64,000 bases of DNA from Guillardia theta CCMP2712 (lineage: Eukaryota > Protista > Cryptophyta). Below the pieces are notes generated by a model. That model was not told the DNA's origin and did no database searches. It was given only the letters and a program-made list of their open reading frames with translations. Below, in pieces: positions 26,301-57,691 of the stretch (its first letter is position 1; every line of letters begins with the position of its first letter). The stretch is taken from positions 3,767-67,766 of the forward strand of contig NW_005434458.1 in NCBI RefSeq assembly GCF_000315625.1, read 5' to 3'. The translations under genes and the position numbers were made by a program.

Positions 26301-26652
26301 CACTCCTTACAAGTGCGACTGAAAGATTGTAGAACTGACCGAGCTCCAAGTCTGCCAATTCGAAAGTGACATCATTGCATTGACAAGATTCTAACCATTG
26401 AATCTGGGTAGATAGCAGAGGAAAACTTTGAAACGATGAGTTTGAACCTTGCGAGGCATCATTGTAAATGTGAACAAGTGTATCGTTATAATCCCAGACT
26501 GTCAAGTTCTCCAGCTGAAAATTCAGTACGACGGCAAGATCCTTGTACTGTTTCACTCGTAGATTGACGGAATCGAAAGATATCGTCCTCTGTGACCAAG
26601 ACACTTGCAGGGACAATAGGAGACAGAGGAACGTCGAAACCCCGTGTTTCAT
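2364..26652 (-). CDS. Giant probably secreted multi-domain repeat protein (~7,200 aa), interrupted by the LTR element at 20942-23017
   Basis: ATG at 26652 with a signal-peptide-like start MKHGVSTFLCLLLSLQVSWSQ (in-frame upstream ATG at 26742). Removing the LTR element plus one CCAAC joins ORF 23005..26742 and ORF 4703..20887 in frame (AGDTRTVG|LHLRISRSHPFPVALVVTFP). Manually phased exons: 26652-4907 (minus insert), 4848-4702, 4478-4216, 3989-2749, 2668-2364; all GT-AG, frame preserved to a TAG. About 34 type-A ~120-150 aa repeats (AG...F...NPLP..G.I.L.FP..F...N....G..G.F...T...ID), 7 type-B repeats and many N-x-S/T sequons. No C-terminal TM seen. Confidence 0.85.
9395..9810 (-). other. Discoidin/F5-8 type C (galactose-binding-like) module inside the giant protein
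   Basis: NITRDFGARILICGFAM...APTTLRFQLSASADGVDF...FRHVRLTITHS...FCEL matches the (L/I)xxDFG..I..F / F.L..S.DG..F / RxVRL.I pattern. Confidence 0.6.
11250..14490 (-). other. Block of 7 type-B beta-sandwich repeats inside the giant protein
   Basis: Units such as TISQNCDVGNVTNVITVTLRSTFALRPGTYIHIGNL...SATWNASSGQLTVRV...FSFNLRNP, with a conserved W and FSF.L.N; distinct from the flanking type-A units. Confidence 0.7.
12865..13100 (-). other. Fibronectin type II domain inside the giant protein
   Basis: GSPCVFPFFFRGKNHTSC...GRAWCATS...WDYC matches the FN2 consensus C-x-F-P-F-x-(F/Y)-x-G...C...W-C-x-T...W-x-Y-C. Confidence 0.85.
20942..21168 (+). repeat. 5' LTR (227 bp)
   Basis: TG...CA ends, internal AATAAA, base-for-base identical to 22791-23017. 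Confidence 0.97.
21170..21182 (+). promoter_or_regulatory. Primer-binding site TGGTAGCGTAAGG
   Basis: Begins 1 nt after the LTR with TGG, complementary to a tRNA CCA end; TGGTAGC fits an initiator-Met-type acceptor end. Confidence 0.7.
21267..22656 (+). CDS. gag: Gag (N-terminal coiled coil + Ty3/gypsy-type capsid), split by a +1 frameshift at the A8 run 21765-21772
   Basis: WFGELEFQF...QKVDIAATLVGNRVRNWLQTL...TWESFKSLLVKEYL...IQGSEEKTSDFVNRFSALA resembles the Retrotrans_gag capsid and major homology region. Deleting one A fuses the two ORFs (EENKK|MFEEMMQRF). No CCHC knuckle; acidic tail. Confidence 0.8.
22791..23017 (+). repeat. 3' LTR (227 bp)
   Basis: Identical to 20942-21168. Confidence 0.97.
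25200..26240 (-). other. Two fibronectin type III domains near the N-terminus of the giant protein
   Basis: APTIPQRVRLYRLDNSSLSVRWDCP...SLLDTTLYEVSLFA and PPYQPMLSQYGVSLLQLAWSRP...NLKLGKQYFFRVFAC: P..P, W..P and L..g..Y.f.V.A signatures. Confidence 0.8.
25501..25734 (-). other. Ly6/uPAR (three-finger)-like Cys-rich module inserted in the second FN3 domain
   Basis: LRCY...C..C...ICPAGDSCV...HGCSS...C...VCNSSLCN: LxCY start, GC and terminal C-x4-C-N. Confidence 0.6.
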
Positions 26653-27059
26653 GCAAGATCCTCTCCTTGTGCTACTCCTCGCGTCTTGATCCCTTTGATT
26701 TGCTTGATGACAACTCATACTTTGACTCGACGCTGATTTCATTGCTGCAGAGCAGTCTCCCTTACCTTCCCTCCACCCTCGTTTTTGAAAGCTGTGTCCT
26801 CCCTATCTCCGTTAAGCTTGCTCCCTCTGGATGAGTTCGCTCTTGCTACCTCTCGTAGCTGCCCCAAAGCTTCGTTCGCTGCACTGAACGTGTCACTCCC
26901 TGAAACAATTTCGGTCTAGTCTTTTACCTTAGACACACTCAAGCTTCGACTATTCCTGCAGATGCATAAGTCATGGATGCTTTATCTGCTCGTCTTTCTG
27001 CATGGATTCCTCGTCTCTTTCTTCCTTCGCCCCTCCTCTCCATCGCGCCGCTCGTCCCC

Positions 27060-27790
27060 AACAGCCATTCCACCGACTCGGAAATCCACTATCTATCACC
27101 CCCCATCCCGCCTTGCTAATTGTACCACCCCATCAGCGGGTACCCACTCACCCAGTGCATTGAACATTTCATCATCTTTGTAGTGGGGGTGGGGGTAGTG
27201 ACCCCCGGTGAGTCAATGACAATCGTGAAGGAAGAGCCGTCAAAATTATGTAGCCCTCATCTCCCCAGTGACCCGGGCCCGGCGGCGAGAGCAGGGCGAG
27301 AGCAACTGCGAGAGCAACTTGAGTCCAAACTTAGGTGACACGGCCTCAGACTGCTGAGTGACTGAGCCCGGCCCGGGCTCCAGCCGGCCCCGCGAGCCGG
27401 CGGTCAGTCAGGCTCAGCGGCAAGTTACGGGGGAGGCACAGTGGACCGGGCCACCCTATTAAACTTGTGACAGTGTTTAACACTGAGTCTCGGACACTGG
27501 CCGTCACTGGCACCGTCAGTGTCAGTCACCCGGCCCGATCATCGGATGCCATGATCGGCCCGCCGCGCCGGCATCGTAAGGGCGGAGCGGCAGCCGCCGC
27601 CGTCGGGGCCCGCCGCGCCAGCCTGCCTGGCTGTCACGCCGGCCGGGCTGCCACCCGTGACCCGGCGTCACGGATCTCGGACCCACCGCCGACGGTCATG
27701 AGGCGAAGTTGGCCGCAGCGTTAAAGTTGCCGGGGCCGGGCCCTACTACGGTACAGCTGTGAGTATCGGGACTTTAGGCCTTCACAATAC
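27060..27790. other. Non-coding patchwork tract (ACCC-rich, then GC-rich micro-palindromic)
   Basis: Dense CCGG/GGCC/GTCAC/CAGTG/GAGTC words and short hairpins (ccgatcatcgg, cccgggcccggc); no credible ORF; upstream of the giant gene. Confidence 0.7.
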
Positions 27791-27888
27791 TAAGAATTAC
27801 TCAATCTTTTGACGAGTAAAAATATGAAGAAGACTGAAGTGACGCTACTACGGATAGCAACACGGCCGGGGGGGCATGAGGGAGTTCG

Positions 27889-28075
27889 GAGGGAGAGGGA
27901 GGGAGAGGGAGGGAGAGGGAGGGAGATCGGAGGGAGATCGGAGGGAGAGGGAGGGAGGCCGACGGCGGGAGAGGGCGAGAGAGGGACGGAAAGGGAGGGA
28001 GAGGGCGGGAGAGGGAGGGAGAGAGCGGGAGAGGGAGGGAGAGGGAGGGAGAGGGAGGGAGAGGGAGGGAGAGGC
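27889..28075. repeat. Polypurine (GGGAGA)n-type low-complexity tract
   Basis: Directly visible. Confidence 0.9.
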
Positions 28076-28449
28076 TGAGCCTGGAGAGGAAGTATACAGG
28101 AACATGGAAGCTCGAGAAGGTCAGACCGGACCTGAAGAAGAAAGAGTCCAGGAGGCGAAGAAAGTGCATGGAAGCCCTCAAGGGGGAAGAAAGTGGGAGT
28201 AAAAGGGACGAAGAGGAGGAGGCTGAGGCAGTGCGATGATGGTCTTCAGGGCGGAAGGGAGCAGAAACAAATGCAAACTAGAGGAACGAAGGAAAGACGT
28301 TGATGGAAAGTGACGTGAATAGGAGAAGGAGCTAGAGGGAATGGAAAGAGTCAAAATCAGGAGGAGCACGCAGGGAAGAGAAGTGAACAGGCGGGTGTTG
28401 ATATATGGAGACAAGACAGATGGAGATGCAGTGAAATGGGCTGCGACAC

Positions 28450-31400
28450 ATGTCTAGCAACCTTACGTCATCTCACCTAATTTCAAGTCAATCTGCTTTG
28501 ACGTTGTCAACTCTGTTCTTGTTGCTGTTTTCTGGTGAGAGAATCACTGTCAGGGTTCGACGTGCTTGGATTGAGTCGAACTGAATCAGCAGCCATTGGG
28601 GAAATGACTTCCTTCCTCTCGTGCTGCGTCAGGTGATGCTTTTGACTATCATCCTTCTACTCACTTGACTTCGTCATCATCTGCTGACCTCATCTTTCAC
28701 AGCTCGCGGTCGTCAAACAGTTTTATTTCTTCACAGGTGACTTGTTTCCTTCTTGATGTGTCAGACCTAAAGGGAGTGCGGAGAAGGGCCTCGACGTGGA
28801 GGAGAAGAGCAAGAAGTGTGGAGTCGGGCTGGTGTTTCGACCTACCCGAGCTGCAGGTGGGCCCGGGCAAGTTTGTGCTGCCGTGACGCTTGTCAGATGG
28901 TCGGGTTGAGCTCAAGGTGTTCTCGCTTATCCCCAAGAGCCCAGCTGACATGTGCGGGATGATCCGACCCGACGACACGCTGACACGTGAGAACTTTTGA
29001 CGCCCTCGAGGTCGCGAGGCTCACAGGACGCGCAGACGTTGATAACATCGACGTGAGTGACTTCACGGTGAACGAAGGTGACGGATCTCCTCCCTCCCCG
29101 TCCTCCTCCTCCTCACCCCTTGCAGTCGCGCCGCTCGTGGTCGGAGAGCGAGGATCGGAAGTTCGTTTGACCTTCAGTCGTGGCGAGGAGGTAGAGGAGG
29201 CGAGGACGATTGACTGAGACTGACCTGCTCACTCTAGGAGTTTCAAGTGACAATCTTGAGGGTGTGGGGGGGTAAGTGAGGGCGACGATGCTGAGAGAGC
29301 GAGCACGAGGGCATGAGATGTAGGCGAGCGAGGAAGAGGTTGCGGGTACACCCGTCCTGCTTCCAGCAGGCGTTTGATGGCATTTGACAAGTTCAAAAAG
29401 TAGGTTGTACACAAAAAATAATGAACAGGAAAAGAGCAGGCGGGCAACCCGACACCTGCGGTCAAACAATGATCTAGTGTTTGCCGAAGAACTCCAGCGA
29501 GTCTGTCACGTGACTTCTCAGCTCCTGGGCCCCTCTTGCACCCAATTCACCTGCTGCTTCCTTGTACTGGCTAGCGCGAGCCGCGAGGGTCTTGACTGGC
29601 CTCTCAATGGTCGGCAGGTTGGGATCCTGAGGTTAAGTCAGACAGACGGCAGGGTGAGAGCGCAAACTCACCTTGCCGAAGATTATCTTCTCTCTGTCCA
29701 TCACCTGCCCAGCACGTCAGGACGCTGGAGAGTAGAGATCGTCACATACAGGATGTAGCGCTTGCTGGGAAGGCTGAGGAGCGAAGTGATAGCCCTCCTG
29801 CCTCAGGTGCTTCTCCATGGTAAGGAAATCGTTGAGTTGCCCGACCACTCTCCTGCCCGACTGTGAGAACAGCTCCACAAAGATCTTCTCTTCTTCACCC
29901 TCCGTCGCGCTTCCTCCCTGCAGCCTTCTGCTCCAACTGTCAGCACATGGAAGAAGAATGAGAAAGTCGCACCATCTGCTCATTCGTCATGGGGCCACTC
30001 GATCCCTGTGCACGAGGCTGAGCTGAGACGGGAGGGAGGACGTGAAAACCCACCATGCTCTGAAGCGGCTGGGAAGTTTGCTTCGTGATAGGCCCGCTCG
30101 AACTCTGGCGAGGAACGTGAGAAGACCAAAGAGGGGAGCAGGACGACAAGTACCAGGTGAGAGGAGGGCTGAGAAGTCTGGAGGGTGATCGGTCCACTAG
30201 AAGCCTGTCAGGCAGGATGAGATCGGCTTCTCCAAGACTCCAAGAAGCTCAGCCGTTGAACTTACGTCACTTCCCAATGGCTGACTTGTCTGACGAGTTA
30301 TCGGCCCACTGGAGCTCTGAGTAGGAAGTCACGGCCGGACAAGAGACGCCCACAAGCGTCAACCTCACTGTCAAATGGCTGCGACGTCTGCTGAGTGATG
30401 GGCCCCCCACTGCAGGCTGTCAGACCACATGGAAGGAGAACTACAAGCGAACCTGCTCATGCTGTCCAATGGCATCTTAGTGTCCTTCGACGCCGGTCCT
30501 CCCCAGCCTGCAAGAATCCGACGGTCAGTCCGCGCGTTCACTGGACAGTCGATCCTCCTTCTCACCCGCTTCGTTATCTCCTGGGCCGGCATCTACCGTC
30601 TGCACTGACGCTGGTCCACCCCAGCCTGTTGACCTAGTGAGTAGCGACTTGAGACGCGTATCTCTTGCACCAGCTTCGTTGTCTCCCGGACCCGCTTCCA
30701 CAGTCTGTACAGATACAGGGCCACCCCATCCTGACCCTCCAACGTCATCCACTTCGGCTTCCGAGCACAAGCATCACCTGCTTCGTTGTCGCCTGGCCCG
30801 GCGTCCATGGTCTGAACCGAGGCGGGCCCTCCCCACCCTGCGATGAACAAGGGAAACACGAAACGAGTCAGCCCAAGAGATGCGACAAGATGCACGTCAA
30901 GCTTCCGAAAGCTCTCTTTGACTTTATGCTCACCAGCTTCATTGTCGCCAGGACCTTTGTCAATCGTCCGAGTTGAGGCTGGACCCCCCCATTCGACCTG
31001 AAAGCATCGTCAGGAATTGGTTGAGATCGACTTGAATACTCTACCTCCATGCTTGAGCTAGCAAGCTTCTGTGGCCGAATGCTCTTGCTCACCCTCCTGC
31101 TCCGACCCATCAGACTCAGTGGCACTGCAGCGACTTCTTGTCACTTGAGTATCTTCCCCTCAATCTGCTTGCAGTTTGGCGTGTTGCAGTCCAGCAGGGC
31201 CTGCAGATAAACTTGACGAGAGAACAGACGAGGGGCAAAGGCACATACCTGGCTCAAGGTGGAGTCCATTCCTGGTATAGCTTCTCTCAAAGACTTCTGC
31301 TTCTGCTGTGCCGATTGATTCGCAGTGCCAGCCTGTGGGGGGTGAAGGCATCAAGACATACTCAATCTGTACTTTTTGATCATTCACACCTTCTGTTTCG

Positions 31401-33233
31401 ATGCTTGTTTTAACATCTGCAGGGGAAGTCAAACGTTTTGATCTCAGACTTACAACTCCACCTTGAGCTGCCTCTCCTTCGCCAGAGCATTCTTCGCCTT
31501 CAACACAGAGAAGTTTGGAAAGTACGGCTTCTTCACTTCATCCCATCTGGGGGCAGCGGCTAAGAAAGGAACAGGAAGGAATCAGGTACCTTTTCGCTCC
31601 ATTGTCGCCAACATAATAATATCGCATGCTGACTGGGTCGTAGTGCCTGGTCCACTTGACCTGGAGGTCGTCAAGAGACTCAAGATGATCGGGAGACCTT
31701 ACTGGTATGCTTTGTGCCTCAGGTTGTGCCCGAGGCAGCTGAGACTGACTGTCAGGCCTCGTGACCAGCTGCTTCGATTCATCATGCTCCACTTCCTGCG
31801 CCTGTTGTGCTTCTTCCTGATGAACCTGCTCGGCGTGGGCCACTTGGACAGCTCTGTGTGCCGCGTGGCGGTGTAAGGACTTCGTGATCGAGACGGCACC
31901 ATGAGGACGCTTCACTTCATGTTTCATAGGCATGGTTGACTGCCTGCAAGTCCTACAGTTCACCACCACATGTCGCGGACGAGCCACAAGCGCCCACCTG
32001 CGTGATAGCTTGTTCTCAGCTCCGCTGCTGCCCAGGGAATCAAAGAACGAGTCGAAATCCTTGGAAGCCTAGTGGCACATAAGCGGCGCATCCACAAACG
32101 TCACCTACGACAACCTCCTGGGATGACAAGGCTCCCTGATCCCCGAGGTAGTACTGCGACAACTCTTGGAGTCTCCCAGGGGTCTGCAACGTCAAACTGA
32201 GGTCAGCTTTGCGGAGCCGCGTCACCACCATCACCTTGGATCTGTAGTTTGCTGGAATGAAGCTGGGCTCACCGTTGAAGGCGATGGGATACCTACCAAG
32301 CTCTCCCTGCAAGAACGTTGAGCAGCGTCTTCCACCATATCCGTCTGCCAACCTGGGCAGGACCAGAAACAGAGCTCGGCCAGACGTCGGGGCCTCGGGC
32401 TGTCTCTGCCTCAGCTCTCCTTCAACATACCAAGACCTTTACCTGGATACGCATTGAGACTTGCTGGTCCCGGGCCATTGTAGATCGCAGTTGACTGCAC
32501 ATCAGTGTCATATCCAACTCTCGGTGGTTTCTGTTCCCCTTACCTTGGCCCCTCCCTCGTCCTCAGCCCTCGAGTTTTCCTCCAATGCTTTCGCCGCACA
32601 CATGAGAGGATCTGCTCACGGATAAGAGAATACACTAAGAGAGCAGCTGGATCAATCGGCAACCTTGCATGCACTCCTTTGTCGGCGGAGTCTGCTCGTT
32701 CAAGTATCCATGCAGACATTCAGGGCTCTGTGTGTGTGTCAGACATCAAGTTACATTCAAATGACGTTCTCTTCTCCATCATACCTCCGCGTCCCAATCT
32801 CTCCAAGACCCAAAGACAGGTTTGCACTTGCTTGCTAACGAAGTCTACCAGGAGTGAGATTGATCAACCAAGACACCATTTTCACCTTAGAGCTTGCAGA
32901 AGATAAGCTTCGGGATAGAAGGATAAGGCCAAGCGCAGACAAAGCGAGGCAGCAGATGATCTTGTGCTGTATATTGAATCACGTCATCTCAATTGCCAGG
33001 ATCCTTTCAACATCCCACAGCATCGAGACTCACACATAGCAATTCACTGCCCCAACTCCGATACCGTGTTGAATTCGTTTCTGCTCTCCTTCCTGCTGAC
33101 AGCATCTTTCTTGTCTTATCCTCCCTCTTCTCTTCTATCCATCTCCTCCTCTGAATTCTTCTTCCATCCTTCTTCTCCATCCTCGTCGCTCACTTACCAT
33201 CATCTTGTTCCTCGCCATGCCGCGAAGAGCCAT
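28450..33233 (-). CDS. Multi-exon host gene, largely low-complexity, with a WW-like domain and tandem 20-aa repeats (boundaries approximate)
   Basis: Many short GT-AG introns on the minus strand; possible start MALRGMARNKMM at 33233. Spliced KWTRHYDPVSMRYYYVGDNGAK..CPRWDEVKKP (~31530-31660) fits WW W-x9-YYY...W. GWGGPASVQT repeats at 30480-30837. Confidence 0.55.
30480..30837 (-). repeat. Three tandem 60-nt duplicated exons plus a partial fourth
   Basis: Exons 30837-30778, 30730-30671 and 30625-30566, each cag|...|gt, encode GWGGP(A/V)SVQT(M/V)(D/E)AGPGDNEA; the next exon starts GWGGPASKDT at 30507. Confidence 0.85.
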
Positions 33234-33239
33234 AGCGCT

Positions 33240-34310
33240 CAACCCCCCGCCTCAGTCAACCTTCGCTCAGTCTCCTCAGGTTCACCTTGATCATCTGGAG
33301 ACAACCTACCCCATCATTTGAAGCTCTTTTTGAGTATATAGTACCCCTACTTGATACAACCCACCCCTGATCTGTCCTCAACTGATCGCTGCCCAATCAA
33401 ATTTCTTTGATGCTTCCTAATACATCAAAGAAAACCTTCTTAGACCTCTGAGGTCAGCCCAGAAAACTCTCTTCTGAGGCGAGCTGGTGAAGTTAAAACA
33501 TTATTGAATAAATCATTTTTGATTATACATCTGTTTTAACTTCACCAGCTCGCCTCAATGAAGCGATAGCAATAAGCAATGAACTACCCACCATCTCCAA
33601 CAATCGAACATGCAAAAGTACCCCTTCTTCTCTATTCCTCAACCCCCACATTTCATACCACCCCACTGTACACCACCACTCTTGTCCCCCAAGACCCTCT
33701 AAGTGTCGCAAACGGCATTTTTTTTTAAATGACCCTACACGCCAACGACAACCCTACGGTAGCAAGTACCACCCCCTTTTTCTCTTTTGCCTACCCCGTG
33801 GTCTCGCTTTCCCCAACAGATAAAGTCTTTGTTGGTAAAAAAGAAACACCCACCCTTGCTATTGGGGAAAACAACCCCTACAAGTACCCCTGATGTAAAA
33901 GCTATGGCGGTGACCCCCCATCCCCTCTCGATCTCTGGTAGTTTTTCCCTATTTCTGAACGAATGTGGATACCTACCCCACCCCGTGGTTTGATGGGCTG
34001 GACGCACCCGTCTTCAACTGCACCAATAGAAGAACTCTCCAGATTCCATTCTGCCGTTCCAAAGGCAGTTGGCGTCCCATTCTCACCATGATTTACTCAA
34101 CTGTAAAAGGTAAAATGATCTTCTTCGGAAACTGTATCAAAATTTAACACATTTTATAACTTGACTGAAAAAGGTCGGAGTGATATGATACACACTCTCT
34201 CTATATATTTGAAATTAAGTATTTATTTGATACTAATATAAGTCAATATACACTCAAATATTTCATCTATATTGAATCCTACAATACTTGTATAATCCGC
34301 CAACTGGACG
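33240..34310. other. Intergenic ACCC/TACCC-rich patchwork tract followed by an AT-rich segment
   Basis: Top-strand C-rich non-periodic sequence (caagtacc, ctaccccaccccg, tgacccccca), then AT-rich 34130-34300; lies between divergent genes. Confidence 0.6.
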
Positions 34311-35189
34311 TGTATGAGTTCTGCAATGCCGGGTTGTGTGTCAGTCCGAACGGATGGAGGGAGAACGAGAGCAGGAGGAGGAGGATGTGGGGAGGAGAGG
34401 GAGCAGGATAGAAGAGACGAGCGGAGCAGAGTGCTGGAGTGATACAAGAACAGCTGTCAGACTTCGTCCTGAGCTTGAGAAGCGCTTGTCATGTGGTTGG
34501 ATGAAAACGTGTGTCGCATGAGTCGCATCCGTTGCTGTCACGAGGAATGGCGGAAGGGACAGTGAGGCGAGGAGTGGAAATGAACTTGATTACGATCTCT
34601 ATTATGTTCTTGCATCAAGTTTTGGTGTTCGCGAAGGTGTTATCCACGCAACGCACCATTGTTGCATCCACAAAGTACATTACTACGTTGTTCTGCTGAG
34701 GATGATCTATAGCTAGATAAGCAGCAGATAATTCTCAAGGTCGCCTTGCACTGAAGCGTCTTAGTTTAGCCCAGTTCCTTGCCATAGACTTGATATCATC
34801 GCGCTATGCTCTTCTGCATTGATCGCCTTATGGCCTCCGCAGCTGCCACAGTTTGTGATGGTTTCTTGCAGGGTAGCCCACTTGTTGACACCAGAGGCTC
34901 TCGGTGTGCAGATGGAAATGGCCAGCGACTCGTCCAGGTGATGTTCTAGCACTACATTGACCCTGGATAGCATGTCAAGAAGCTGACATGGCTCGTAGTG
35001 TTCTAGACGACTCAGTCTGCAACAGCAGCCCGGAAACAGCCAACAACACTATGTTTTCTTCATTGAGCCAACGTTTGCAAAGGGGAAAGGTAAGATAATC
35101 AGTCATACATGTTGAACTGCTGGATCTCTTTGCGGATGTTGCGGCCTGATGACTTGTGAATGAGCAGGATGAGCTCTCTGCCTACCTCA

Positions 35190-47572: not shown

Positions 47573-48935
47573 TCAACGACTTGATGCAGACGAGCCTGAG
47601 TTCCTCTTGAATTTTTTCCTTAACTTCTTCACGAATGTATTCCATTTCAATTGCCCTCTGCGGAAACTGTAGCCCGAGTCTACATTGATCCAACTGTAGA
47701 AAGACGACTCATACTTGACAAAAATCTCCTGCGATTCCCTGAACATGCGCCTGACTCCGGTTCCTCTTTTCAACTCTTCAAACCTCCTTAGTTCTGTATC
47801 CCTCTCGTCTGCATCCTTGTCAGCTAGCACGTTGTTCATATGCTGCTCAAAACATTTCACGAGAAACTTCACGTCTGAACGTCGCTTTGTATTGCTTTCT
47901 CCAGGCTTCAACTCCCCTGCAGAAACATTTTTCAGAGGGGAATTTGTTTTTTCTCGTTTCCACAGAACCACAACTTCCATGCCGATAATGGGGTTTCCAG
48001 CTCTTGTTTCAAAAGGACTTCTTCCAGAGCCGACGCGCTTGCCCCAACTGCTGCATCAATAGGACCACCCGGGTCTCTGCTCTCATTCACTCCAACAGTG
48101 TCCGAGGCTGCCGGTATTACGGTGCTCCCCTCTCTCCTGCGACCAGACTCAACAACACTCTGACCTGAAGCCTCGGGGTCCCTTTGCTGAACATCTCTCT
48201 GTGATCCACTTGCTTCCCCTCCCGTCTCCATAATCACCTCCCGTATCATAGCTTCCAACTCATCTCGATTCTCTAGCAAGCCTTGCCGAAGGAAATCCTT
48301 CGCTGATTGTCCAGACTCATTTGGTATGAAACCAACTTGTCGCCTCTCCGAACTTGAAACTCCTTCTGCCAATGCCTGGTTGCCCCGGCTAGATTGCTTG
48401 AACTCCAGAACTTCTCTTTGTATTTTTTCTAGGGACGCAACAACCTTGTCATTGTGGACATATTGATGAACGTGTGGAGGAATGCCTGTCGCTTCCATTC
48501 TGCCCCTTGCTTCCTTTGGCATGCAGCAAACAACCTTTGATTTCAAAGTATTCAGCATAGCTTCGTCCTGAAACAAGGTTGACTTCCAAAGAGGATGATT
48601 CCTCTGCAAATTCGTTCTGAGGAAGTCTGCATGGTATGACACGGATGCGAGTGCAAACTCCGCAACTCCATACATGCACATTGGTAATGTTGGGAACAGC
48701 ATCTCAATCGCACTTGTGACCATCCCTGACGAGTCAGGCTTCTTTGAAATGCGGCGGAAGAATTGCAAACTCTGATGAGTCGATGGGAAGCCCTGTTATA
48801 GTCACGGCACTGCTCGAGGGACAGTGAGTACTGACAGTGAGGGCCCGGATGAACAATAAGTTGCTGCCCCCTTCCTAATAGAGTGACTTCCAAGATCCTC
48901 TGCCAGTTGTAAACCGAGTGAACGCAGATGGGCAG
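47573..48935 (-). pseudogene. Crypton-type (CryptonS/oomycete-like) tyrosine-recombinase transposon fragment
   Basis: DLGSHSIRKGAATYCSSG (YR HxxR motif, ~48845-48900), ITGLPIDSSEFAILPPHF (~48745-48798), FALASVSYHADFL..NHPL...LF, MEATGIPPHV, AWKLWFCGN..PLK..KRRSDVKFLV and RRGQLKWNT. Two frameshifts; the N-terminal half and catalytic Tyr segment are missing. Confidence 0.8.
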
Positions 48936-49360
48936 TCACTGTACACATCAGTGACTCGGATGCCCCCGTGCGGCGTGCTGAGTCACGTCCGGCCATCCGA
49001 TCAGCATGTGACGCCGCCCGGTCAGTAATGCCCGGGGCCGGGGATGATCCGCCGGGGCCGAGTCGTGGCACCCAGTGGCACGGCACCGACAACGTCCGAT
49101 CACGGTCCCGGCGACCGCCCCGGCCCGAAGTCCGGCGGCCTGGCCCGGCCGCCGGGCCGCGGCCGCGTCCGAGTCAGTGACAGTGCGGCGGCGGCGGGCG
49201 TACCGTGCTGGTCACCGGGTGACCTGACGGTCACCGTCCCGGGCCCGGGTCACCAAGTTGTGCCGGCGGCCCTCAGAGTGACGGTGTCCGCCGTGACTCA
49301 TCAGACGGTGAGGCCGCTCCCACCGGGGCCGGAGCAACTTGAGTCACTGGGCCCGGATGA
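48930..49360. other. GC-rich micro-palindromic patchwork tract
   Basis: ggtcaccgggtgacc, gacggtcaccgtc, cccgggcccggg; repeated GTCAC/CAGTG/GAGTCA words; shares GAGCAACTTGAGTC with 27312-27325. Confidence 0.75.
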
Positions 49361-51100
49361 AACTTGAAAACCACCCCTCACTCCGGTCACTGTACCCCAC
49401 TTTACAACTCACCCCTCAGTCGTTTACACAATTCCATCTTGTCTGCATCACCCCTCTTTTTCTGCTTCAAACCACCCGTCCTGGAATTCATCACCGAACC
49501 ACCTGGACCACCCTCAGACCCCTCCACTACCCACCCCACCCGTTCAAACGACCTTTTAGTCAGTTGTTTTTGCTACAGCGTCACCCGGAGTCCTTGAGGG
49601 CGACTGTACCCCACCCCTGGGGTTAAAACGACCTCAAACACCACCCCCCTGAATTTAAAACGTATCCCTACCCCATTTGTCAACTTCAGTACAATCTTCG
49701 CACTTTCACCCCCATATTTCTCCACCACCCCCTCCTACTCCTCTTGAATGTCCTACCGGTGGTGGTAGCTAAATCAAACATTTCACTCAACTTTTTTTCT
49801 TTTTAACTCAAATTTTCCCGGGAACAACATCACTACCCCGTCTACTTCCCAATCGATGGCGTACCAAGTACCCCACCCTTCAAATGATAGTCATCCACCC
49901 CGGTATGTCCCCAGAGAAAATCCATCCCCGTGATACCCACCCAGTCTCTGAGCTGTACTTTGTACCCACTACCCTACCCACCCTCAGATTGGGTCTTCCC
50001 GGGAACTAGTGAACTACCACAGTCGCAACGCTGTATCCCACCACCCTACCTAGGACGTTGAGAGTTTCCCTCGAATACCCCCTCTGACTCTGTCATACTA
50101 CCCGTACTGTTGAAGTACCCTCCGGCCGTCCTCCACCCCATCTTTGCAGCACTCTACCATACCACTCCCGTCGTCCTTCAGTTCAAGTACCCCTACATCA
50201 TCTAAAAACACCCCACCCCCGGTCAAACTCTTATATATATTATCTACCCCTGACCCAGCGGCATCTCCTCCGACAGATCTTTTCATTCCTCTCCTCTCTC
50301 GATGACCCCACCCTTGCATTTAGTACCCACCCTACTCATCCTACACACCCCTCCCAATTCGGTTCACTTATCACTATTGTGTACCCGTCCTATTCAATTT
50401 TTTCTGCACCCTACCTACGGCTAGGAATGTCAACCCCCCGGTTAACAATAACCATTCTCATCACGAGGGTGGGGTGAACATTGACAGTACAAGGTTGGGG
50501 TGGTTTTTGAGAGAATGAGGTAGGGTAGGGTGGGTCTCTCGGATTAAATTTCCGTAGGAGGACGGGGTCATTGGTCGTACTTGAGTATTCCGATTGTGGG
50601 TGGGTGTTGACCTTAGGTAGGGTGAAATTCGATAAGGGGATTAGGGGGTAGGGTGGAGTTGATGACATTGGAGACGGGGTACTTCGGAGATGGGACCAAA
50701 AGGGTGGTAGTTCAGCCCAAGACTGGCTTGATTGGTGGAGGGGGGGGGTGAGAAGGGGGGTACGAATAATGTTGTGCTCAGGGGTGGGTTCTACAAATCA
50801 CCTCCGGGTGAGCAAGTTTAGACCAGGGGTGGTGGTACATGGTTGTAGGTGTCGCAGTGGAATAGGAAATGGGGGGTAGTCCGAGACAGGAATCCATGGG
50901 GGGTGGTGAAGTTTTGAGGGTGGATGTACTAAAGATAGGGGGTGGGGTGTCCCGCAAATCACAGGTGGGTAGGTGGAAGGCGTAGGGATAAGGGGGAAGG
51001 CGTACAGGTTGGGGGGTCAAATTTTTGGGTGGTTTTCCCCATGATTTCGGTGGTGGGGTGGCAGTGGGATTAGGGTTGGGTGGGGGTAGGGGGTCCAATC
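49360..51100. other. Strand-polarised ACCC (left) / GGGT (right) patchwork tract with a GC-skew switch at ~50430-50470
   Basis: Top strand C-rich 49360-50420 (accaccc, taccc), G-rich 50465-51095 (gggtgg, ggggt, gggta); non-periodic, no credible ORF. Confidence 0.8.
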
Positions 51101-52469
51101 CTTGCTATGCAATGGCGCCGAGGGTTCCAATGGAAGGAGCGACGGGGCATGAGTGGAGGGGAGTCGGAAAGAGAAGCTTGTCTTCATGAAACCGTCCCAC
51201 CTTTCTTACACTCTTCTCCTGCCCTTCTCTCTACTTCTAGAGTCTCCTGGTAGATTGAGCGGGACGAATGTTTGTCTTCGGCTTTGTTGGAATGTAGGTA
51301 GTTTCAGGAGTGAGATTCAGAGCAGGTGGATTTGAAACCCGCAAGTAGGAAGGGAGCAATGTTTTAATTGCAATTGGAATTCGATGTCAGACTGTCTCTG
51401 GTGCGGGTTTCCGATGATTCCTCTGCCTTTTAACGACAGTCGCGTTCTTATAGCCGTGTTGCATTCTATTTGTAGTTATGAGAATTCTGTCTTCATCTCT
51501 GGAGAAATATCGAGAAATATTTGTGATTTTATCTTTGCATAGTCAAACATCGTCTGTCATGATGGTTTTTATAGCATGTCCTACACAAGTTTGATCTAGA
51601 TTGACATAAGACTCAAAGCTCTGCTCTGCAATAGTTTTCAGCTGAAGGTCCTATTTGTCCTCCTATATGGCGAGCGAGAACTCCTCGAATGCTTGATTTG
51701 ACACATGTTTTGTTATGCAGATCAGCTGCAGCAACAAAAGAGCTTTCTGTTGCTTCATCCATTCCTGGCAATCTAATTTGTCCAGGGTCAACGCAGTCAA
51801 GAGATTATGAGGAATTGTTCTCGATCTTGAACTGTTGATCCAGAAGCAATCTACTGCATTTCTTGTGCATCTATGCCAGGATATTAAGCAAACGAAGTCA
51901 GGAGGGATCCGTCGGAGCGTTTCAGTTGATTGTGATAGTAGTATGCTCCACAGGGCGTTGTGAGGTGAATCTGGTGGAAGGTGAACTTCGAGAGTCGTCG
52001 AGATTCAGATAGACGCGCTAGCGTCAGATTCTGTGTGGCTTCATCATGGAGACGTTCGGAAACGATTTACTACATGGTCTCTCTGAGATCTCAGCCACGG
52101 ATAAATCCGTAGTCATTCAAGACAACACAAAGGATAACGGGTACAAGAGCAACGAAAGTTGCGACGTTGTTTGATGACAGGTCCGCAGTTTGCCGAGATC
52201 TTTGCAGCAAGATCCAAAGGAGAATCATGATAACCAACCCACAGAAGCGACTTCCCATATGTTTTCGGGCAAAGGTGATCTCCACTTTGCATGCGACCCG
52301 TAGACTGATCCAACCCATTGCAACAGATGCCTCATTTCCGGACTCAGGCAATGTGCCCGCAAGCTTCAGTGAAGTGGAGAGCGTAGATGCAGATGAGCTG
52401 TCGAGAGGTGTGTGAAAGTCTGATGAGAGGATGAGGAATGGGGTTATGATTGTCCGAGGAATGAGGGTG

Positions 52470-53929
52470 ATGTCAGGAACCAACGTCGATGACGGTTGCG
52501 ATGGATCCGACAGCAACTCGAGGGATGGCCGTCCAGCTGGGGACACGACCTACAGAAAGTTATTTGTTGGTGGGCTAGCATGGCAGGTGATGGGCAGTGG
52601 CAGGGTGAGGTTGAGCCATGACGTCTTGATGTCCAGACAACAACCGAGACCCTGCAAAACCATTTCCATGTCTATGGAGAGCTGCAGGAGGTAATGAAGT
52701 TGATGACAGGGAGAGTTCATTGTTGTCTCATTTCAGTTTCTTTTGTGCAGGCGGTTGTCATATGTGACAAAACAACTGGTAGATCGAAAGGATACGGATT
52801 TGTAATTATCTCGATGCTTTCCTCTCATCGACTCTGACTGGCCGGTTTTCTTTCCTTTCCAGGTTACATACAAAAGGGATGAAGATGCGCAACGGGCTGT
52901 GGCCAACAAATCTCCGATCATGTACGTCAACCCTCTACTTGTTGTGGTCGATGCATTGTGAATCCTTGAGGGTGAAAGAAATCATTCATCATCCCTGGTT
53001 ACCTTCGCTCCCCCTGTTGTCTTCATTCTGTGTCAGATGAACTATTCCTTCAATGTGATTGGGCCCCTCGCAGAGATGGAAGAAAAACGAACTGCAATTT
53101 GGCTGCGCTAGGGGTCAAGAAAGGTATGTAAGATTGCTCTTCGAGCCAACGTCTCAAGCTCCGTTCGTAGAAGGCAAGCGAGGCAAGAGGAATCACAACG
53201 GGCATGGGATGGGACAAGAGAGAGCGATGGGTTATCCCAACCCGATGATGCCCAACGATATGAAGTATCTTCCTCCTCCTGCCTTGTCTTCTTCCTCTTG
53301 CACTGTCCCTGACCCCTCCCTCCCTCCTCCATCGCTGTGAGCTGACCCAGAGGACTCAGCATGCAGATGATGTATCCTATGTACCTCAGAGACGGCGGCT
53401 ACCCTGTTCCTCCCTCTTTCGTCGCCCCTGCTGGGCAGGCAGGCTACCCGGGCATGCAGGGATACTACTTCCCTCCCAACTTTGCCTACCCGATGATGAT
53501 GCCGGGCCATGTAGGACGTCTGAACTGAACTGGCTGTCGATCCCCTGACAGTCTGGCAGTTTCCAGCGCAAGGGTGGAACGGAAACCCCAACATGCAGGG
53601 CGGCAACGTGCCGCGGAATCAGCCGGCACCAGGAACGATAGTTTTCCCGGGGATGATGTATCCGAGTGCGTTGGAGCTGTGGGTGAGGTAGTCTGTGACC
53701 TGACGCTGCCGCAGACAACGATATGATGTTCAACATGAGCCAACAGCCCCCTTCTGCTCCAGGTGAGGACGATACGGCACATCTAGAGTCTCATGCTGGT
53801 CCTGGTCCTGTCAGAGGCTCAGCCGCCGGGAGCAACGATCAACGAGCTGAGCGAGGAGCAGGAGTAGAGCTGGGGATATCAATCGTATCTACTAACACCC
53901 AAGATGTCGGCGCAAATTACTGCGAGTAA
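52470..53929 (+). CDS. Single-RRM RNA-binding protein (RBM24/RBM38-like) with a Pro/Met/Gly/Tyr-rich tail; multi-exon
   Basis: Spliced DTTYRKLFVGGLAWQ|TTTETLQNHFHVYGELQE|AVVICDKTTGRSKGYGF|VTYKRDEDAQRAVANKSPI|.DGRKTNCNLAALG contains RNP2 and RNP1; termini approximate. Confidence 0.9.
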
Positions 53930-54039
53930 AAATCGGATGTCACGAGCCCCTTCCAGGCTTCGGGCCTACGAAGATGAAGTAGGTACGTTGGCGCTGGCCA
54001 CCTCGTACTTGCCGGAGAGATCTGCAGGAGACTTCTCAG

Positions 54040-56400
54040 CTCAGGCAGAGCGAAATGGGCATGCCTCACAGCTCTGGTAGGGGACAGAAGAGGTCGAGTA
54101 ACGGCCGGAGGTGTGGATGCTGGAGCTGCGCGAGTGAGCGGCGGAGAGGGGAGGGGAGGGGAAGGGGAACCTGGTGGCGATGGAGCTGGTGTAGCTGGAG
54201 AGCTGCGTGGTCAGGCTCTTGATCTGTGACTCGCAGCTGATGTGGCGAGCGCTGCGGAGAGCATGAGGGGGGACAAGGGAACATCGGAAGTCCCAGCTCA
54301 CCGGAACTGCTCGTACTCGCTCTCGAGCTTGATGCGTCTCTCCCTTTCCTGCCAAGAGGGTCAGCTTGACCCCAGCTCACGAACCAGCCGGCAGAACCTG
54401 CTGGAACTGGTTGCTCAACTCGACGTTCTCATGCCGCAGGTTCTCCACCTGGACAGGAATAAGACAGACCTATCAGAAGTAGGGAGGGAAGAGGAGAGGA
54501 GAGGAGAGGAGAGGAGATGGAATGGGGTAGGAGGACTCACTTGGCCGGTCAAAGTCCTCACGCGCACTTCTTGCTCACGAAGCTGCAAGGCAACAACGAT
54601 GATCAGGGAGCGATAGAACTGAACGGAGGAGGTGGGCTGCCTCTGCTCTGGCGGTGGCGAGGTGCGACTCAAGCATGCTCCTGTCAGCAGAGATCTGGGA
54701 GATGGTGTCCGAGAGCTCAGAGTTCCTCTGCAGCTCCACTCAGTTCCTTGATGGCTGCGCAAGTCCCCTCCTCCTCCATCCCTCTCTTCCTCCTCCTTTA
54801 CTCTCCCCCTCCTCACCTTCTCGTACTGGTCGCACTTGTAAATGATGGGCTCCAGCTGCCTGGTCGTTTCTTCGTACTGGCAATGCATGTCAACATTCCC
54901 CTCCTTTCACGTGAATCCATCCCTCCCTCTCCCTCTCCCACTCCAATCTCCCGCTACCCCTCCTCCTGCTCAGACCTTGGTGATAGTCTGTAGAGACTGA
55001 GCCTGGATCATCTCGCGCTCCTGGAAGACCTGGTTCAACCTGGGTAGGACTGTCATGCACAGAGATGCGACGAGCAGCTGCTACCTGTTGAGAAGATCTG
55101 CCTTCTCAGCCTTGAGATTTCCGTTCTCCTGCTGCAGCACCTCCACGCTGGCGATCTGGATCATCATGTTCTTGGTTTGGTCCTCGAGCTCAGCAACACG
55201 GATGCGGTAGCGATCCATCTATAGGTCCGCATCAGCGAAACATTGTCCTCCTTCTCCTCCTCCTCCTACCTGGTAGCGGATGGTTCCGTGCTCCTTGCGC
55301 AAGGCCTGAAGGTGAGAATCCTGCATGACAGAGTAAGTTGGCGGCGGCGGCAAATGCTCACGTCATGCCATGGGCTCCATGCCGCTCGGCTCCTGCTCAG
55401 CAACGAGTCAGAGAAGCCCCGGCTAGCTCAGAACCCCTTGACCTGGTTGACACGGATGGCAGAGCTGCTGGCGTACATGCTGGGGAGAAGGTGAGGAGAG
55501 AGGGTCTCGAGTGGGGCACGAGGATAGGAGGAACCTGCCAGTTGACAGAGCGTCTGTGGAGCGGTACATCATGGAGACGTTGCCATACTGGACCTGAGCA
55601 GCACGACAGTCAGCCTGACTGCAGCGGACAGAGGCACAAAGTTCTCACCGGCATGGAGACGAACTCTTGCGAGACAGGGATCACTGCAGATCACAAGCAT
55701 GTCACGAGGGGGGCAGGGCTGCGTGCTGGGTGCAGGTCTTACTGCTGGGCTGAGGGAACATGGCTGACTGAACGTTGTACGCTCCTCCGCCATAGCTGAT
55801 GACTTGAGGGATGGCGAAAGCGCCAGGGCCCATGGCCTGCAGCTCCTGTCAGATGCCCCGAGCAGCAGGCAGCCTGGACGGTACCTGCGAGCTGACAACC
55901 GGCTGGCTCACAAGGATCTGCTGTCCCGACATGACAGGGCTGACAGGAACTGGAGCCTTGCCGGAGGACGGAGGAGAAACAAGCGCGCTGGTAGCATTCA
56001 CGGCCGGGGACGTGGCAGACGTCAGAGGGACGATGACGGGGGAGCTGCCTGATGCGAGCGATGAGAGGGAGAGGAGCGGACAGGAGTGGACCTTTGGCGG
56101 CGTTCAAGGCGGGGGAGTTCTTGGCTGACATCCTGTAGAGCTACATGTCAGAAGGAAGCTTTCAGTTGAGGAAGAGAAGCGTTGAGACAAACACGCAGAG
56201 GAAAAGGCAAGAGAATGGATAGAAGAGGGGGAGGAGGGTGCGAGGAGAATGGAATGAGTAGATTAGGAGGTGATACGTTCGGAGAGGATTATGGCAAGAA
56301 TGCATTAGAATATGTTCACAAGAAATCAGCGCTCCGAGCACCAGCCGTTGAACAGCAATAGGACAGAAGCAAGGCACAAACGCTTCCCTCTCTCCTTTGT
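54040..56400 (-). CDS. Multi-exon coiled-coil protein (boundaries approximate)
   Basis: Exons such as MDRYRIRVAELEDQTKNMMIQIASVEVLQQENGNLKAEKADLLN, LNQVFQEREMIQAQSLQTITK and LQLREQEVRVRTLTGQ with GT-AG introns. Confidence 0.65.
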
Positions 56401-56466
56401 ATTCTCCTCGAGCCCCCGTCTACTCTCATCATGATTGCAATAGCACCTGTTCTGCGCCAAGTTGTT

Positions 56467-56540
56467 CTGCCCTGCCCTGCCCTGCCCTGCCCTGCCCTGC
56501 CCTGCCCTGCCCTGCCCTGCCCTGCCCTGCCCTGTCCCTG
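56467..56540. repeat. (CTGCC)n microsatellite
   Basis: About 13 perfect units. Confidence 0.95.
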
Positions 56541-56649
56541 TCTTGTCCTCTGCTAGTGCAGTTCTCTCCTTGAGGTCTCCTCCGGCTCCCCCTCCTCTCC
56601 TGGACTTGCGCGTCACAACTTGCCCGGCACGCGGCATTGACTAGACTAG

Positions 56650-57330
56650 CCGTTATAAGGGCACGCGAACTTGGTACAAAGTTTAGAATACCTTTTAGAG
56701 TTTACAATTATTTAAACGTTGAACTGTCCGAGTAATATTTCATAATACTTACACAACATTTCAAAACAAATAAAGAAGAAATCAAATGTCTGCAGGAAGT
56801 GGCCTTCAGCATTTCACCAAGGACGATACCAAGAAATATTATTAAATAGTACCATATCTCTATCTTCTCTATTCATCTGTTCACAAACTACGGAAATTAG
56901 TACTGGATCATTTCGAATTTATAATATTTATAGTTTAATATAAATATAGATACAGTAATTTTAAAACTCGTCGGATCGCATTGCCGACACGGTGCCACCC
57001 GGTTCCCCACCCCACCCCAAGTACTCGAATACAATAGACCCCTACCACCTCTTAATCCCTGTTTTAACCTATTTTATGGGGTTTCTGGTGGTCATTGGCT
57101 CACTACCCTACCCCCCATATTGCTCTAACAGTTCCTGGCAGCGCTTCCGGGGGGAAGCGACGCTAAAACTCTCACAAAAGATCAAAATATTTCATAATTA
57201 CACCTATAATTTCAAATTTGAGAAAGGAATTCGAGGCTCCCGAGAGCAGCATTTCATCTCACTCAGCAAACCCGGGGCCGTGGAGGAACATCAGGCCGCA
57301 CGGCCCGAGTCTAGGCCCGGATATGAGGGG
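56650..57330. other. AT-rich segment plus short ACCC and GC patchwork tracts between divergent genes
   Basis: AT-rich 56680-56965, then gtgccacccggttccccaccccaccccaagtac..., then cccggggccg...cggcccgagtctaggcccgg. Confidence 0.55.
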
Positions 57331-57691
57331 GATGATCAGTGGATGAGGGGGATGATGAGTGTATGAGGGGGATGATGAGCATGATGAGTGGATGAGGGGG
57401 ATGAAGAGGAGATGAGGGGGGATGAGGCAGGGAGAAACTCGATGCGATGAGACATGCGGGAGGTAGGAGAGCGGCGAGGAGGGGGAGGGGGAGTAGGTGA
57501 GGAGAGAGAGAGAGAGAGAAGAGGAGCGTAGCAGAGCAGAGAATAGTGCAGAGGTGATAGAGAGGGGAGGAGGAGGGGAGCGTCGCGAATAGAAGAGGTG
57601 CGGAGTGAGCAGGCACACGAAGAAGGTCTAGTTGCAAGCAGAAGGCTCTCACCATCCGCGAGGAAGCATCGAGGAGGTTCGAGGGCTGAGC

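Follow-up and report, generated by a model that had tools for sequence, protein, structure and literature searches.

Palindromic islands and G-run arrays beside gene starts: a candidate two-component promoter-side DNA architecture in the nuclear genome of Guillardia theta

We present evidence that the start sides of many genes in Guillardia theta CCMP2712 carry tracts of two kinds, and we judge, at a probability of roughly 55%, that these tracts form a two-component, lineage-specific promoter-side DNA architecture of the nuclear genome in which GC-rich palindromic islands (type A) are built by insertion and strand-pure swarms of G-runs (type B) are promoter G-arrays. The window, by which we mean the whole 64,000-nucleotide stretch of DNA that was analysed, comes from scaffold JH993180.1. 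An earlier sequence-only reading had described tracts upstream of genes that share two vocabularies, one of GC-rich micro-palindromes and one of strand-biased ACCC words. Both types prove to be real; two of the tracts named in that reading do not stand as described. The patch at 43490-43710, to which no strand can be given, holds few vocabulary words and, over 43490-43700, shows no palindrome enrichment and is statistically not distinct (z 0.4), while the short patch at 46940-47110 (G-words followed by C-words, again without a strand) adjoins the 3' end of a repeat element at 47158 and, by public gene calls, sits in a convergent gap rather than 5' of a gene. We note that a further patch of G-words (GGGGGGTGGAAGG...) at 39460-39600 is absent from the list given by that reading.

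The type A islands were analysed by counting S-centred odd palindromes, five-base words of the form NN-S-N'N' with C or G at the centre, against dinucleotide shuffles. Island A1 (27200-27760), which is tiled with such words, contains 88 where 27.3 are expected (z 12.5) and island A2 (48930-49370) contains 93 where 25.6 are expected (z 12.9), an excess of 3.2 to 3.6 times the shuffle count that places 60% of the bases of A1 and 71% of those of A2 within S-centred words. A mini island at 57240-57330 has nine against 3.3 (z 3.4), and two islands on another scaffold have the same S-centred and arm-extension properties; none of the window's three islands has a strand. The commonest words are CCSGG, GGSCC, CGSCG, GCSGC, GTSAC, CASTG, AASTT, GASTC and ACSGT. 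Enrichment of at least 2-fold extends to 14 of the 16 arm pairs in these islands, which is a sequence-independent symmetry rule and not the work of a few motifs. At the first two arm positions a palindrome extends with a chance of 0.45-0.58, as against 0.28, and this falls off beyond. The S-centred excess is absent from GC-matched coding controls, and A/T-centred palindromes are at or slightly above expectation (z 3.4 in A1). The micro-palindromes of the earlier vocabulary are present, but even ones such as CCGG show no excess over shuffles in the islands. All four combinations of centres are used about equally in n-S-n'-S-n chains. This counts against the explanation we favour, and simple back-and-forth copying, which predicts C/G and G/C centre pairs only, was rejected. 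A1 (561 bp, GC 0.66) and A2 (441 bp, GC 0.71) also qualify by sequence as CpG islands (at least 200 bp, GC at least 0.5-0.55, observed/expected CpG at least 0.6), with observed/expected CpG of 0.94 and 1.03, respectively, versus 0.57-0.85 in genes. Repeated 7-9-mers no more than 20 bp apart are in excess 10- to 25-fold in direct and 6- to 8-fold in inverted orientation, an excess that is underlain by a shared island vocabulary enriched 3- to 7-fold irrespective of distance. The islands have words of up to 15 bases in common despite their lack of colinearity, among them 14-15-mers of mixed composition such as GAGCAACTTGAGTC, which occurs in both A1 and A2.

Type B tracts take up the second vocabulary. 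Tract B1 (33240-34000, minus strand) is C-rich on the plus strand, that is, it presents G-words on the sense strand of a minus-strand gene with its start codon at 33233. B2 (49371-50450, minus strand) carries ACCC words on the plus strand, B3 (50451-51100, plus strand) carries GGGT words on it, and the patch B4 (56990-57140, minus strand), within the divergent gap at 56638-57691, again has ACCC words on the plus strand. A short patch at 27060-27199, of no single strand, has ACCC words on the plus strand at 27060-27160 and then GGGGT words on the same strand at 27170-27200; it lies in the divergent gap between coding sequences that start at 26244 (minus) and 28450 (plus). Runs of at least three G number 133 in 2743 bp of type B sequence, 82% of them with T as the next base. 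GGGTGG, GGGGTA and similar words are enriched 27- to 80-fold, their reverse complements are nearly absent from the same strand, and GGGT occurs at 1.6 to 2.1 times its shuffle count, so that the strand-biased ACCC words reported earlier are borne out as strand-pure swarms of G-runs ending in T. Tract length reaches about 1 kb, G-run density is roughly one per 20 bp, and G-run starts show neither periodicity nor fixed spacing. Canonical G-quadruplex motifs (four runs of at least three G, loops of 1-7 nt) are predicted four times each in B2 and B3, twice in B4 and nowhere in B1. Separately, B1 contains a perfect 26-nt hairpin, an inverted repeat at 33475-33557. Telomere-like addition was rejected as a source of type B, as TTAGGG occurs 0-2 times per tract, no more than in shuffles, although the telomere unit of this species may differ; TAGGG is raised only 1.4- to 2.9-fold in the three long tracts. 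The promoter-proximal 254 bp of B3 are about 96% identical in a diverged relative, and conservation there is not lower than in the transcribed DNA beside them. Given the missing periodicity, the missing telomere-like units and this conservation, the suggestion that a terminal-transferase-like activity wrote type B is not upheld, and untemplated end addition is probably not how type B tracts arose. Most likely they act as promoter DNA, which may operate by nucleosome exclusion, G-quadruplex formation or factor binding.

The distribution of the tracts follows the orientation of the genes. Tracts occupy four of the five divergent gaps in the window and none of its four convergent gaps; with two further loci added, the counts become 7 of 11 and 0 of 10 (P = 0.004). 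This agrees with the earlier claim that tracts lie between divergent genes and are missing between convergent ones, except that a 420-bp divergent gap in the window (40354-40773) is empty, as are three of the six in the two extra loci, and we count these tract-free gaps against the explanation we favour. No order or orientation of tracts is fixed in the window or in the extra loci (L001 and L002). In six of the seven window patches the nearest gene has the G-words on its sense strand; as a strict rule this was rejected, being broken at 39460-39600, where the plus-strand G-word patch gives the minus-strand gene downstream a C-rich sense strand, as well as in L001 (13801-14100) and in L002, and the varying orientation at 39460-39600 and at L001 13801-14100 also counts against our explanation. 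In the one tract stretch that was checked for transcription, spliced RNA contigs leave 48900-51118 at zero depth, B2 included, and the spliced contig of the gene for an RRM protein begins at 51119, with B3 stopping 19 bp short of its first base. A raw RNA run (X21) has almost no reads anywhere on the stretch and is uninformative on starts or strand.

Evidence for how type A sequence arises comes from the repeat element beside A2, a minus-strand copy (47158-48941) of a multi-copy, transcribed family that is 5'-truncated at the island. This copy has six short insertions of its own, five called against two other element copies and the sixth only with a third, outgroup copy, together with an 83-nt deletion; other copies have zero to three short insertions. 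All six form S-centred odd pentamer palindromes with their flanks. The five that were simulated create nine new S-centred words (simulation P = 0.0008), and four of the seven indels fall within the 242 bp nearest A2 (P = 0.008). One insertion, of 11 nt, repeats in direct orientation 9 nt of a sequence that lies 4 nt away. At the junction of element and island a palindrome centre is flipped, CAGT[C>G]ACTG, the sequence being CAGTGACTG in the window and CAGTCACTG in two other copies. We have one instance of such a flip, and an inverted 8-mer lies 7 nt from it. The same signature appears in two of three indels of an unrelated 555-bp duplicate away from islands. The sample is small (six plus two events), and the insertions at 48833-48905, which lie outside the contig of an independent DNA run, are taken from the reference assembly alone. 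Insertion plus flanks find no longer-than-chance match in the window, and templating in trans from nearby islands was rejected. Since insertions in the nearby repeat copy write the same palindromic words as the islands, type A is probably subject to an unusual, local process of mutation. To this extent the idea of a sequence-writing process holds for type A, while its terminal-transferase part for type B falls.

We suggest that type A islands could be built, at least largely, by local insertions of a few bases, each of which would repeat the neighbouring 2-4 bases in inverted form on the other side of a single C or G. The rule may be written n -> n.C.n', often n.C.n'.G.n, with very short direct duplications as well. 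Such insertions might accumulate in unconstrained, untranscribed DNA beside gene starts until it is tiled with S-centred palindromes, and we infer a process, at work in repair or replication, of the class of short template switching or fold-back synthesis; short template switching and spacer inversion are established classes of mutation (PMC5453318, PMC8604942). The preference for a C or G centre, the cause of which is so far hypothetical, counts against this explanation, and the 14-15-mers common to islands go against purely local copying and could be selected motifs. A stronger version, in which a very active small-insertion process n -> n.C.n'(.G.n) prefers gene-start DNA and writes new GC-rich promoter islands from scratch, we offer tentatively and expect to fail rather than to hold. 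Our literature search found no paper describing palindrome-writing promoter islands.

It is also possible, though we find it doubtful, that the tracts are a selected promoter code, dense arrays of binding sites in which dyad sites for dimeric factors stand with G-box or CACCC-like sites and palindromy reflects protein recognition. The position of tracts at the start side of genes, the end of B3 just before a transcript start with its conserved proximal part, and the 14-15-mers and distance-independent vocabulary common to islands on different scaffolds would all suit such a code. The breadth of arm-pair enrichment speaks for a symmetry rule instead, the signature recurs both in new insertions within a repeat element and in a duplicate that lies away from islands, order and orientation are not fixed, and several promoters have no tract. 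The mechanism originally put forward, break-and-fill cycles in open promoter chromatin in which snap-back synthesis by polymerase theta accounts for type A and addition by a terminal-transferase-like enzyme for type B, is in our view unlikely. Polymerase theta does switch among untemplated extension, snap-back extension and extension templated in trans (PMC4912351), junctions of synthesis-dependent microhomology-mediated end joining (SD-MMEJ) do hold short direct and inverted templated inserts (PMC2943611, PMC5728401), and the 11-nt insertion with its nearby direct copy is of this kind. A one-base centre, however, is too small for a free hairpin loop, and the end-addition part meets the lack of periodicity and telomere-like units in type B and the conservation of its proximal part; a literature search on POLQ in Guillardia found nothing. 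Furthermore, contig 48912-53299, A2 included, from an independent DNA run (X1, recorded in 2021) is identical to the reference with 0 differences. This argues against break-and-fill and against ongoing hypermutation, as had been envisaged, and any writing must therefore have taken place on an evolutionary timescale.

That contig also bears on whether the tracts are repeats or artefacts. Hairpin-based excision, as by hAT-type elements, can leave short palindromic footprints. Such footprints, accumulated from promoter-preferring cut-and-paste elements, or else degraded transposon or MITE copies, might account for the tracts, and both the repeat element adjoining A2 and the perfect inverted repeat within B1 are in keeping with this; we nevertheless regard it as very unlikely. 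Searches with blastn between tracts and across the rest of the window gave no matches, and the 9-mers that four islands share follow no common order (longest colinear chains of 2-7 versus a null of 2.8-5.2), which upholds the earlier observation of a shared vocabulary without colinearity. No terminal repeats or target duplications were seen at tracts, the element's upstream part has left no remnants in the island (overlapping 8-mers inflate the chain of 10, for which the null is 6.9), and the contig has a single-copy read depth of 66 against 170-650 for the adjoining element. Hairpin footprints moreover predict even palindromes, which are not in excess. The tracts are thus, as had been stated, neither transposon copies nor tandem repeats, and a satellite origin was rejected likewise, TRF giving only micro-arrays of two to three copies of 11-24 bp and G-runs having no periodicity. 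Two further candidates were dropped: structured RNA, with no Rfam match in 26500-58000, and a larger repeated unit that would surround the element and include the islands, the neighbouring 394- and 395-aa proteins being unrelated. Pfam searches of the window's open reading frames were uninformative. Although polymerase artefacts are common on GC-rich palindromic DNA, an artefact of assembly or amplification is hardly credible given the independent contig, with its identity and single-copy depth, and the recurrence of the same architecture on other scaffolds.

Several known systems resemble parts of this architecture. The islands are like promoter CpG islands in composition, in their length of 440-560 bp, in their position beside gene starts and in having no assembled RNA where tested, but CpG islands, whose definition is compositional, lack any palindrome grammar, and only some Guillardia promoters have an island. 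G-rich promoter elements include GT/CACCC boxes and G-quadruplex motifs, and there are also origin G-rich repeated elements. Type B likewise consists of strand-specific G-run arrays (GGGGTGGGG-like words) upstream of genes, differing in its length of up to about 1 kb, its density and unfixed spacing of G-runs and its 82% of runs ending in T, and being known from sequence alone. Template-switch mutations (PMC5453318) and spacer inversion (PMC8604942) are local events that create or perfect short inverted repeats or invert a spacer, as do the inserted inverted copies of 2-4 adjacent bases and the C>G flip at the element-island junction; the known events are rare and scattered with arms usually of 5-30 bases, whereas in Guillardia the arms are 2-4 bases, the centre is nearly always one C or G, and events seem to pile up into islands of 440-560 bp beside gene starts. 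Polymerase theta end joining and SD-MMEJ (PMC4912351, PMC2943611, PMC5728401) likewise make short insertions copied directly or inverted from within a few bases, but one-base-centred symmetry and a C/G centre are not described in the papers found, and the Guillardia insertions, recognised from sequence, show no flanking deletion signature. Yeast mitochondrial GC clusters (PMC4478555) and algal and fungal mitochondrial palindromic repeats (PMC4524435, PMC7218506) consist of short palindromic units, rich in GC, that multiply between genes; these form consensus families, some of them mobile, whereas the Guillardia islands are nuclear, single-copy and without an alignable consensus.

If short palindrome-forming insertions do build the islands, one mutational mechanism would be seen to produce new GC-rich sequence at gene starts that is non-homologous and hundreds of bases long, with a bearing on the origin of CpG-island-like regions and regulatory DNA, and G. 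theta would offer a natural setting in which to study template switching or fold-back synthesis at an unmatched density. Under the stronger, tentative version, a large share of regulatory DNA would be the cumulative product of a single repair or replication error mode and not of substitution, transposition or duplication. We also note that neither alignment-based repeat finders nor searches for promoter motifs can cope with the tracts. In the closest relative, Hanusia phi, the CFAP45 protein is 94% identical in amino acids. Lastly, gene models beside tracts are often wrong, as seen from the CFAP45 model, which is short at its N-terminus, and from the RRM gene, with its leader of 930 nt.

We have found that the two GC-rich islands of the window that we call type A, A1 (27200-27760) and A2 (48930-49370), are dense in one class of short odd palindrome. 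The word counted was the pentamer NN-S-N'N', where S is C or G and N' the complement of N, and the null was dinucleotide-preserving shuffles; A1 holds 88 such words against 27.3 in shuffles (z 12.5) and A2 holds 93 against 25.6 (z 12.9). In a 200-bp profile of the window, C/G-centred odd palindromes are dense at 27201-27800, 48801-49400 and 57201-57400, where a mini island (57240-57330) is weakly positive (z 3.4), and two islands on another scaffold (locus L001, 3201-3720 and 12701-13220) behave in the same way as A1 and A2. A/T-centred odd palindromes are at or slightly over expectation (z 3.4 in A1, -1.7 in A2), and the S-centred excess is absent from three coding stretches with similar GC content. 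The GC-rich micro-palindrome vocabulary proposed in the sequence-only reading therefore holds for odd, S-centred palindromes but not for even ones, which show no excess over shuffles in A1 and A2. The four main tracts of that reading are real, while the one placed at 43490-43700 was overstated (43490-43710 gives z 0.4). S-centred words cover 60% of A1 and 71% of A2, with at least 2-fold enrichment for 14 of the 16 possible arm pairs (CCSGG, CGSCG, GCSGC, GTSAC, GGSCC and CASTG leading). The probability that a palindrome extends is 0.45-0.58 at arm positions 1-2 versus 0.28 in shuffles and falls further out, and this drop after two arm positions indicates that the basic unit is a word of 5-7 bases. 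Such words are also linked, n-S-n'-S-n chains occurring at about 10 times the shuffle frequency and in all four centre combinations.

The islands share words without sharing an order. 7-9-mers common to the four islands are 3-7 times as frequent as in shuffles, even across scaffolds (z 15-26), and mixed-composition 14-15-mers are shared as well, GAGCAACTTGAGTC being present in A1 and A2, and GGACGGTGACCGTCA and ATCCGATCAGCATG being common to the window and L001. The longest colinear chains of shared words between islands equal the permutation null, so that their order is random, and the common vocabulary without colinearity that had been claimed is borne out. By blastn the tracts have no similarity to each other or to the rest of the window, except for a hairpin within 33475-33557; Rfam gave no match; and TRF found nothing in the tracts beyond tiny 2-3-copy arrays, in agreement with the claim that they are not tandem repeats. 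At distances of up to 20 bp, 7-9-mers recur in direct orientation with a 10-25 fold and in inverted orientation with a 6-8 fold excess, which is the trace expected from local copying.

We note that insertion events can be read directly in a repeat that adjoins A2. This element is multi-copy (depth 170-650) and expressed, its ORFs have no Pfam match, and its copies lie at 47158-48941 (-) in the window and, in other loci, at L001 9112-10944, L005 825-2873 and L006 972-1924; the window copy is 5'-truncated at the island by at least ~197 bp. When compared with two or three others, the window copy shows specific insertions of TGG (48903-48905), CCCTCACTGTC (11 nt, 48833-48843), C (48738), TTCAAG (48353-48358), GCCTCG (near 48105) and GATCCGAT (47220-47227), and a specific deletion of 83 nt (48802/48803); the two insertions nearest the island are known from the reference assembly alone, as 48803-48911 has no contig from the independent DNA run. 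Copy-specific insertions elsewhere amount to none in L001, one of 2 nt in L006, and two single bases and one long insert in L005. Each of the six window-specific insertions gives rise, together with its flanks, to one or more new odd pentamer palindromes centred on S, and the five found first add nine S-centred words, a result matched by 0.08% of 20,000 simulations of random insertions with the lengths and composition of the five real ones. Some take the form n.C.n'.G.n (TT.C.AA.G.TT, ATC.C.GAT.G.ATC) or n.S.n' (CTG.G.CAG); the single C divides the even palindrome AG|CT, and the 11-nt insertion brings together CCC following GGG and a stretch of 9 nt that directly repeats a sequence lying 4 nt downstream. 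Of the seven window-specific indels, four fall within the 242 bp next to A2 (binomial P = 0.008), where indels and substitutions stand at 4:4 versus 3:35 in the rest of the copy (P = 0.012). At the element-island junction the element's CAGTCACTG has become CAGTGACTG, with the centre flipped and an inverted 8-mer lying 7 nt from it. An unrelated 555-bp dispersed duplicate (41982-42530 and 45750-46304; 96% identity, 15 substitutions, 3 indels) carries the palindrome signature at two of its three indels (CTTG, forming AA.C.TT, and C, forming CT.C.AG), the direction of change being unpolarised.

These insertion events, direct although few, support the proposal that a local process in the window, and not transposition, writes the short palindromic sequence of type A. 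Copying in trans from the islands was rejected, since no other part of the window matches the inserted letters with their flanks better than chance would. We class type A as putative template-switch or fold-back micro-insertion that, at unprecedented density, would build CpG-island-like promoter islands. Short template switching is a documented class of mutation (PMC5453318), as are spacer inversion (PMC8604942), the three extension modes of Pol theta (PMC4912351), synthesis-dependent microhomology-mediated end joining (PMC2943611, PMC5728401) and, in organelles, GC-rich palindromic clusters (PMC4478555, PMC4524435). No description of such tracts was found in the literature on Guillardia or cryptophyte nuclear genomes that we could cover, most subscription papers, possibly including the genome paper, lying outside it.

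The strand-pure tracts that we call type B (27060-27199; B1, 33240-34000; B2, 49371-50450; B3, 50451-51100; B4, 56990-57140) are of another kind. Read on the G-rich strand, these five tracts (2743 bp in total) contain 133 G-runs of at least three, 109 of them followed by T; GGGTGG, GGGGTG, GGGGTA, GGGTAG and GGGTAC are enriched 27-80 fold relative to the rest of the window, and their reverse complements are nearly missing from the same strand. The number of G-runs is about that predicted by dinucleotide content, and in the three long tracts T follows a G-run 1.6-2.1 times as often as expected (z 3.8-6.8, computed from shuffle means and standard deviations). The tracts, 4.7% of the window's length, hold 46% of its GGGGT/ACCCC words; no periodicity of G-run starts and no enrichment of TTAGGG was seen in them. 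Terminal-transferase-like addition, suggested earlier for these tracts, finds no support, and type B is better read as putative promoter DNA. Within B1, 33475-33557 is the one long hairpin of the 64 kb, a perfect inverted repeat of 26 nt whose arms stand 31 nt apart; it may be a small hairpin RNA gene or the product of a recent inverted duplication on a larger scale.

Over 48912-53299 the window agrees at every base with one contig (depth 66) from an independent DNA run of 2021, and the tract within that interval is real and single-copy. A transcript-derived run gave a contig over 51119-53299 that skips eight GT..AG introns and begins 19 bp past the end of B3, with zero depth at 48900-51118; the compound tract 48930-51100 is therefore missing from assembled RNA, contigs of which may overlook rare RNAs; raw reads of another RNA run fell almost nowhere in the window. 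A freshwater metagenome contains a diverged relative, in which the 254 bases of 50848-51101 show 11 differences and 2 gaps, versus 18 differences in 235 bases in the adjoining 51077-51311; promoter-proximal B3 is thus conserved no less than neighbouring transcribed DNA, a comparison that covers 50848-51311, the gap at 49100-50700 being uninformative at that depth. The same metagenome holds the element, ~96% identical, besides the diverged region of the RRM-domain gene (window 47300-53299), which suggests a Guillardia-like relative in the sample. The RRM gene itself has a leader of ~930 nt (51119-52046) ahead of its annotated start codon, and its RNA skips 51 nt with non-canonical GG..CA ends at 51668/51720 and runs on beyond the annotated stop at 52961.

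Gene calls were those of the public annotation of Guillardia theta CCMP2712 scaffold JH993180.1 (assembly GCA_000315625.1), converted to window coordinates; one annotated locus corresponds to 37573-58105 (100% identity) and another to 13005-36244 (placed by record coordinates, its protein 100% identical to the window ORF). A tract is present in the divergent gaps 26245-28449, 33234-34917, 48703-52045 and 56638-57691. In the convergent gaps 22657-23004, 29218-29473 and 45992-47572 no bin exceeds the thresholds, and 52962-53965 has a single weak GGGT bin, within the continuation of the RRM gene according to spliced RNA. When L001 and L002 are counted with the window, 7 of 11 divergent gaps contain a tract and none of 10 convergent gaps does (Fisher P = 0.004); including the weak bin makes the convergent figure 1 of 10 (P = 0.024). 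The claim that tracts lie mostly between divergent genes and not in convergent gaps thus holds as a tendency, although the divergent gap 40354-40773 is empty and the patch 46940-47110, claimed as promoter-side, was misplaced: by public calls it is in a convergent gap, adjoining the 3' end of the element. One possibility is that the element inserted into a pre-existing tract there. G-words are on the sense strand of the nearest gene at most window patches, but the exceptions at 39460-39600 and at the L001 and L002 sites mean that their orientation is no rule.

Five contigs from TARA and other marine metagenomes are syntenic with L001, sharing CFA20, CFAP45 and the gene of an ARM protein; the CFAP45 on them is 62-69% identical, the level of Hemiselmis. 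They come from a cryptophyte-like organism and are compact (GC 0.58, spacers of just 100-400 bp, called genes without evident introns). Neither palindrome island nor G-word swarm occurs in an estimated 17 kb of their non-redundant sequence, so that, as far as these loci show, not all cryptophyte-like genomes have the architecture. The public Guillardia CFAP45 model (L001 14573-15757, 395 aa) is ~115 residues short at its N terminus compared with homologues of ~510 aa, the full-length ones including that of Hanusia phi (94% identity); judged by these homologues, the true start would have to lie in annotated intergenic DNA, beside an ACCC tract.

Elsewhere in the window, identical 227-bp direct repeats (20942-21168 and 22791-23017) stand on either side of gag-like ORFs, an arrangement that fits a very recent LTR element. 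An uninterrupted ORF of 5394 codons (4703-20887, -) has one fibronectin type II match; the adjoining ORF of 1245 codons appears from its sequence to encode a surface protein that is secreted and heavily N-glycosylated; a large protein search found no relatives of it. Tandem arrays lie inside two gene calls, 26 bp x 13.9 (97% matches) at 38775-39136 in 38170-39316 and 72 bp x 5.7 (91% matches) at 44220-44634 in 44074-44703.
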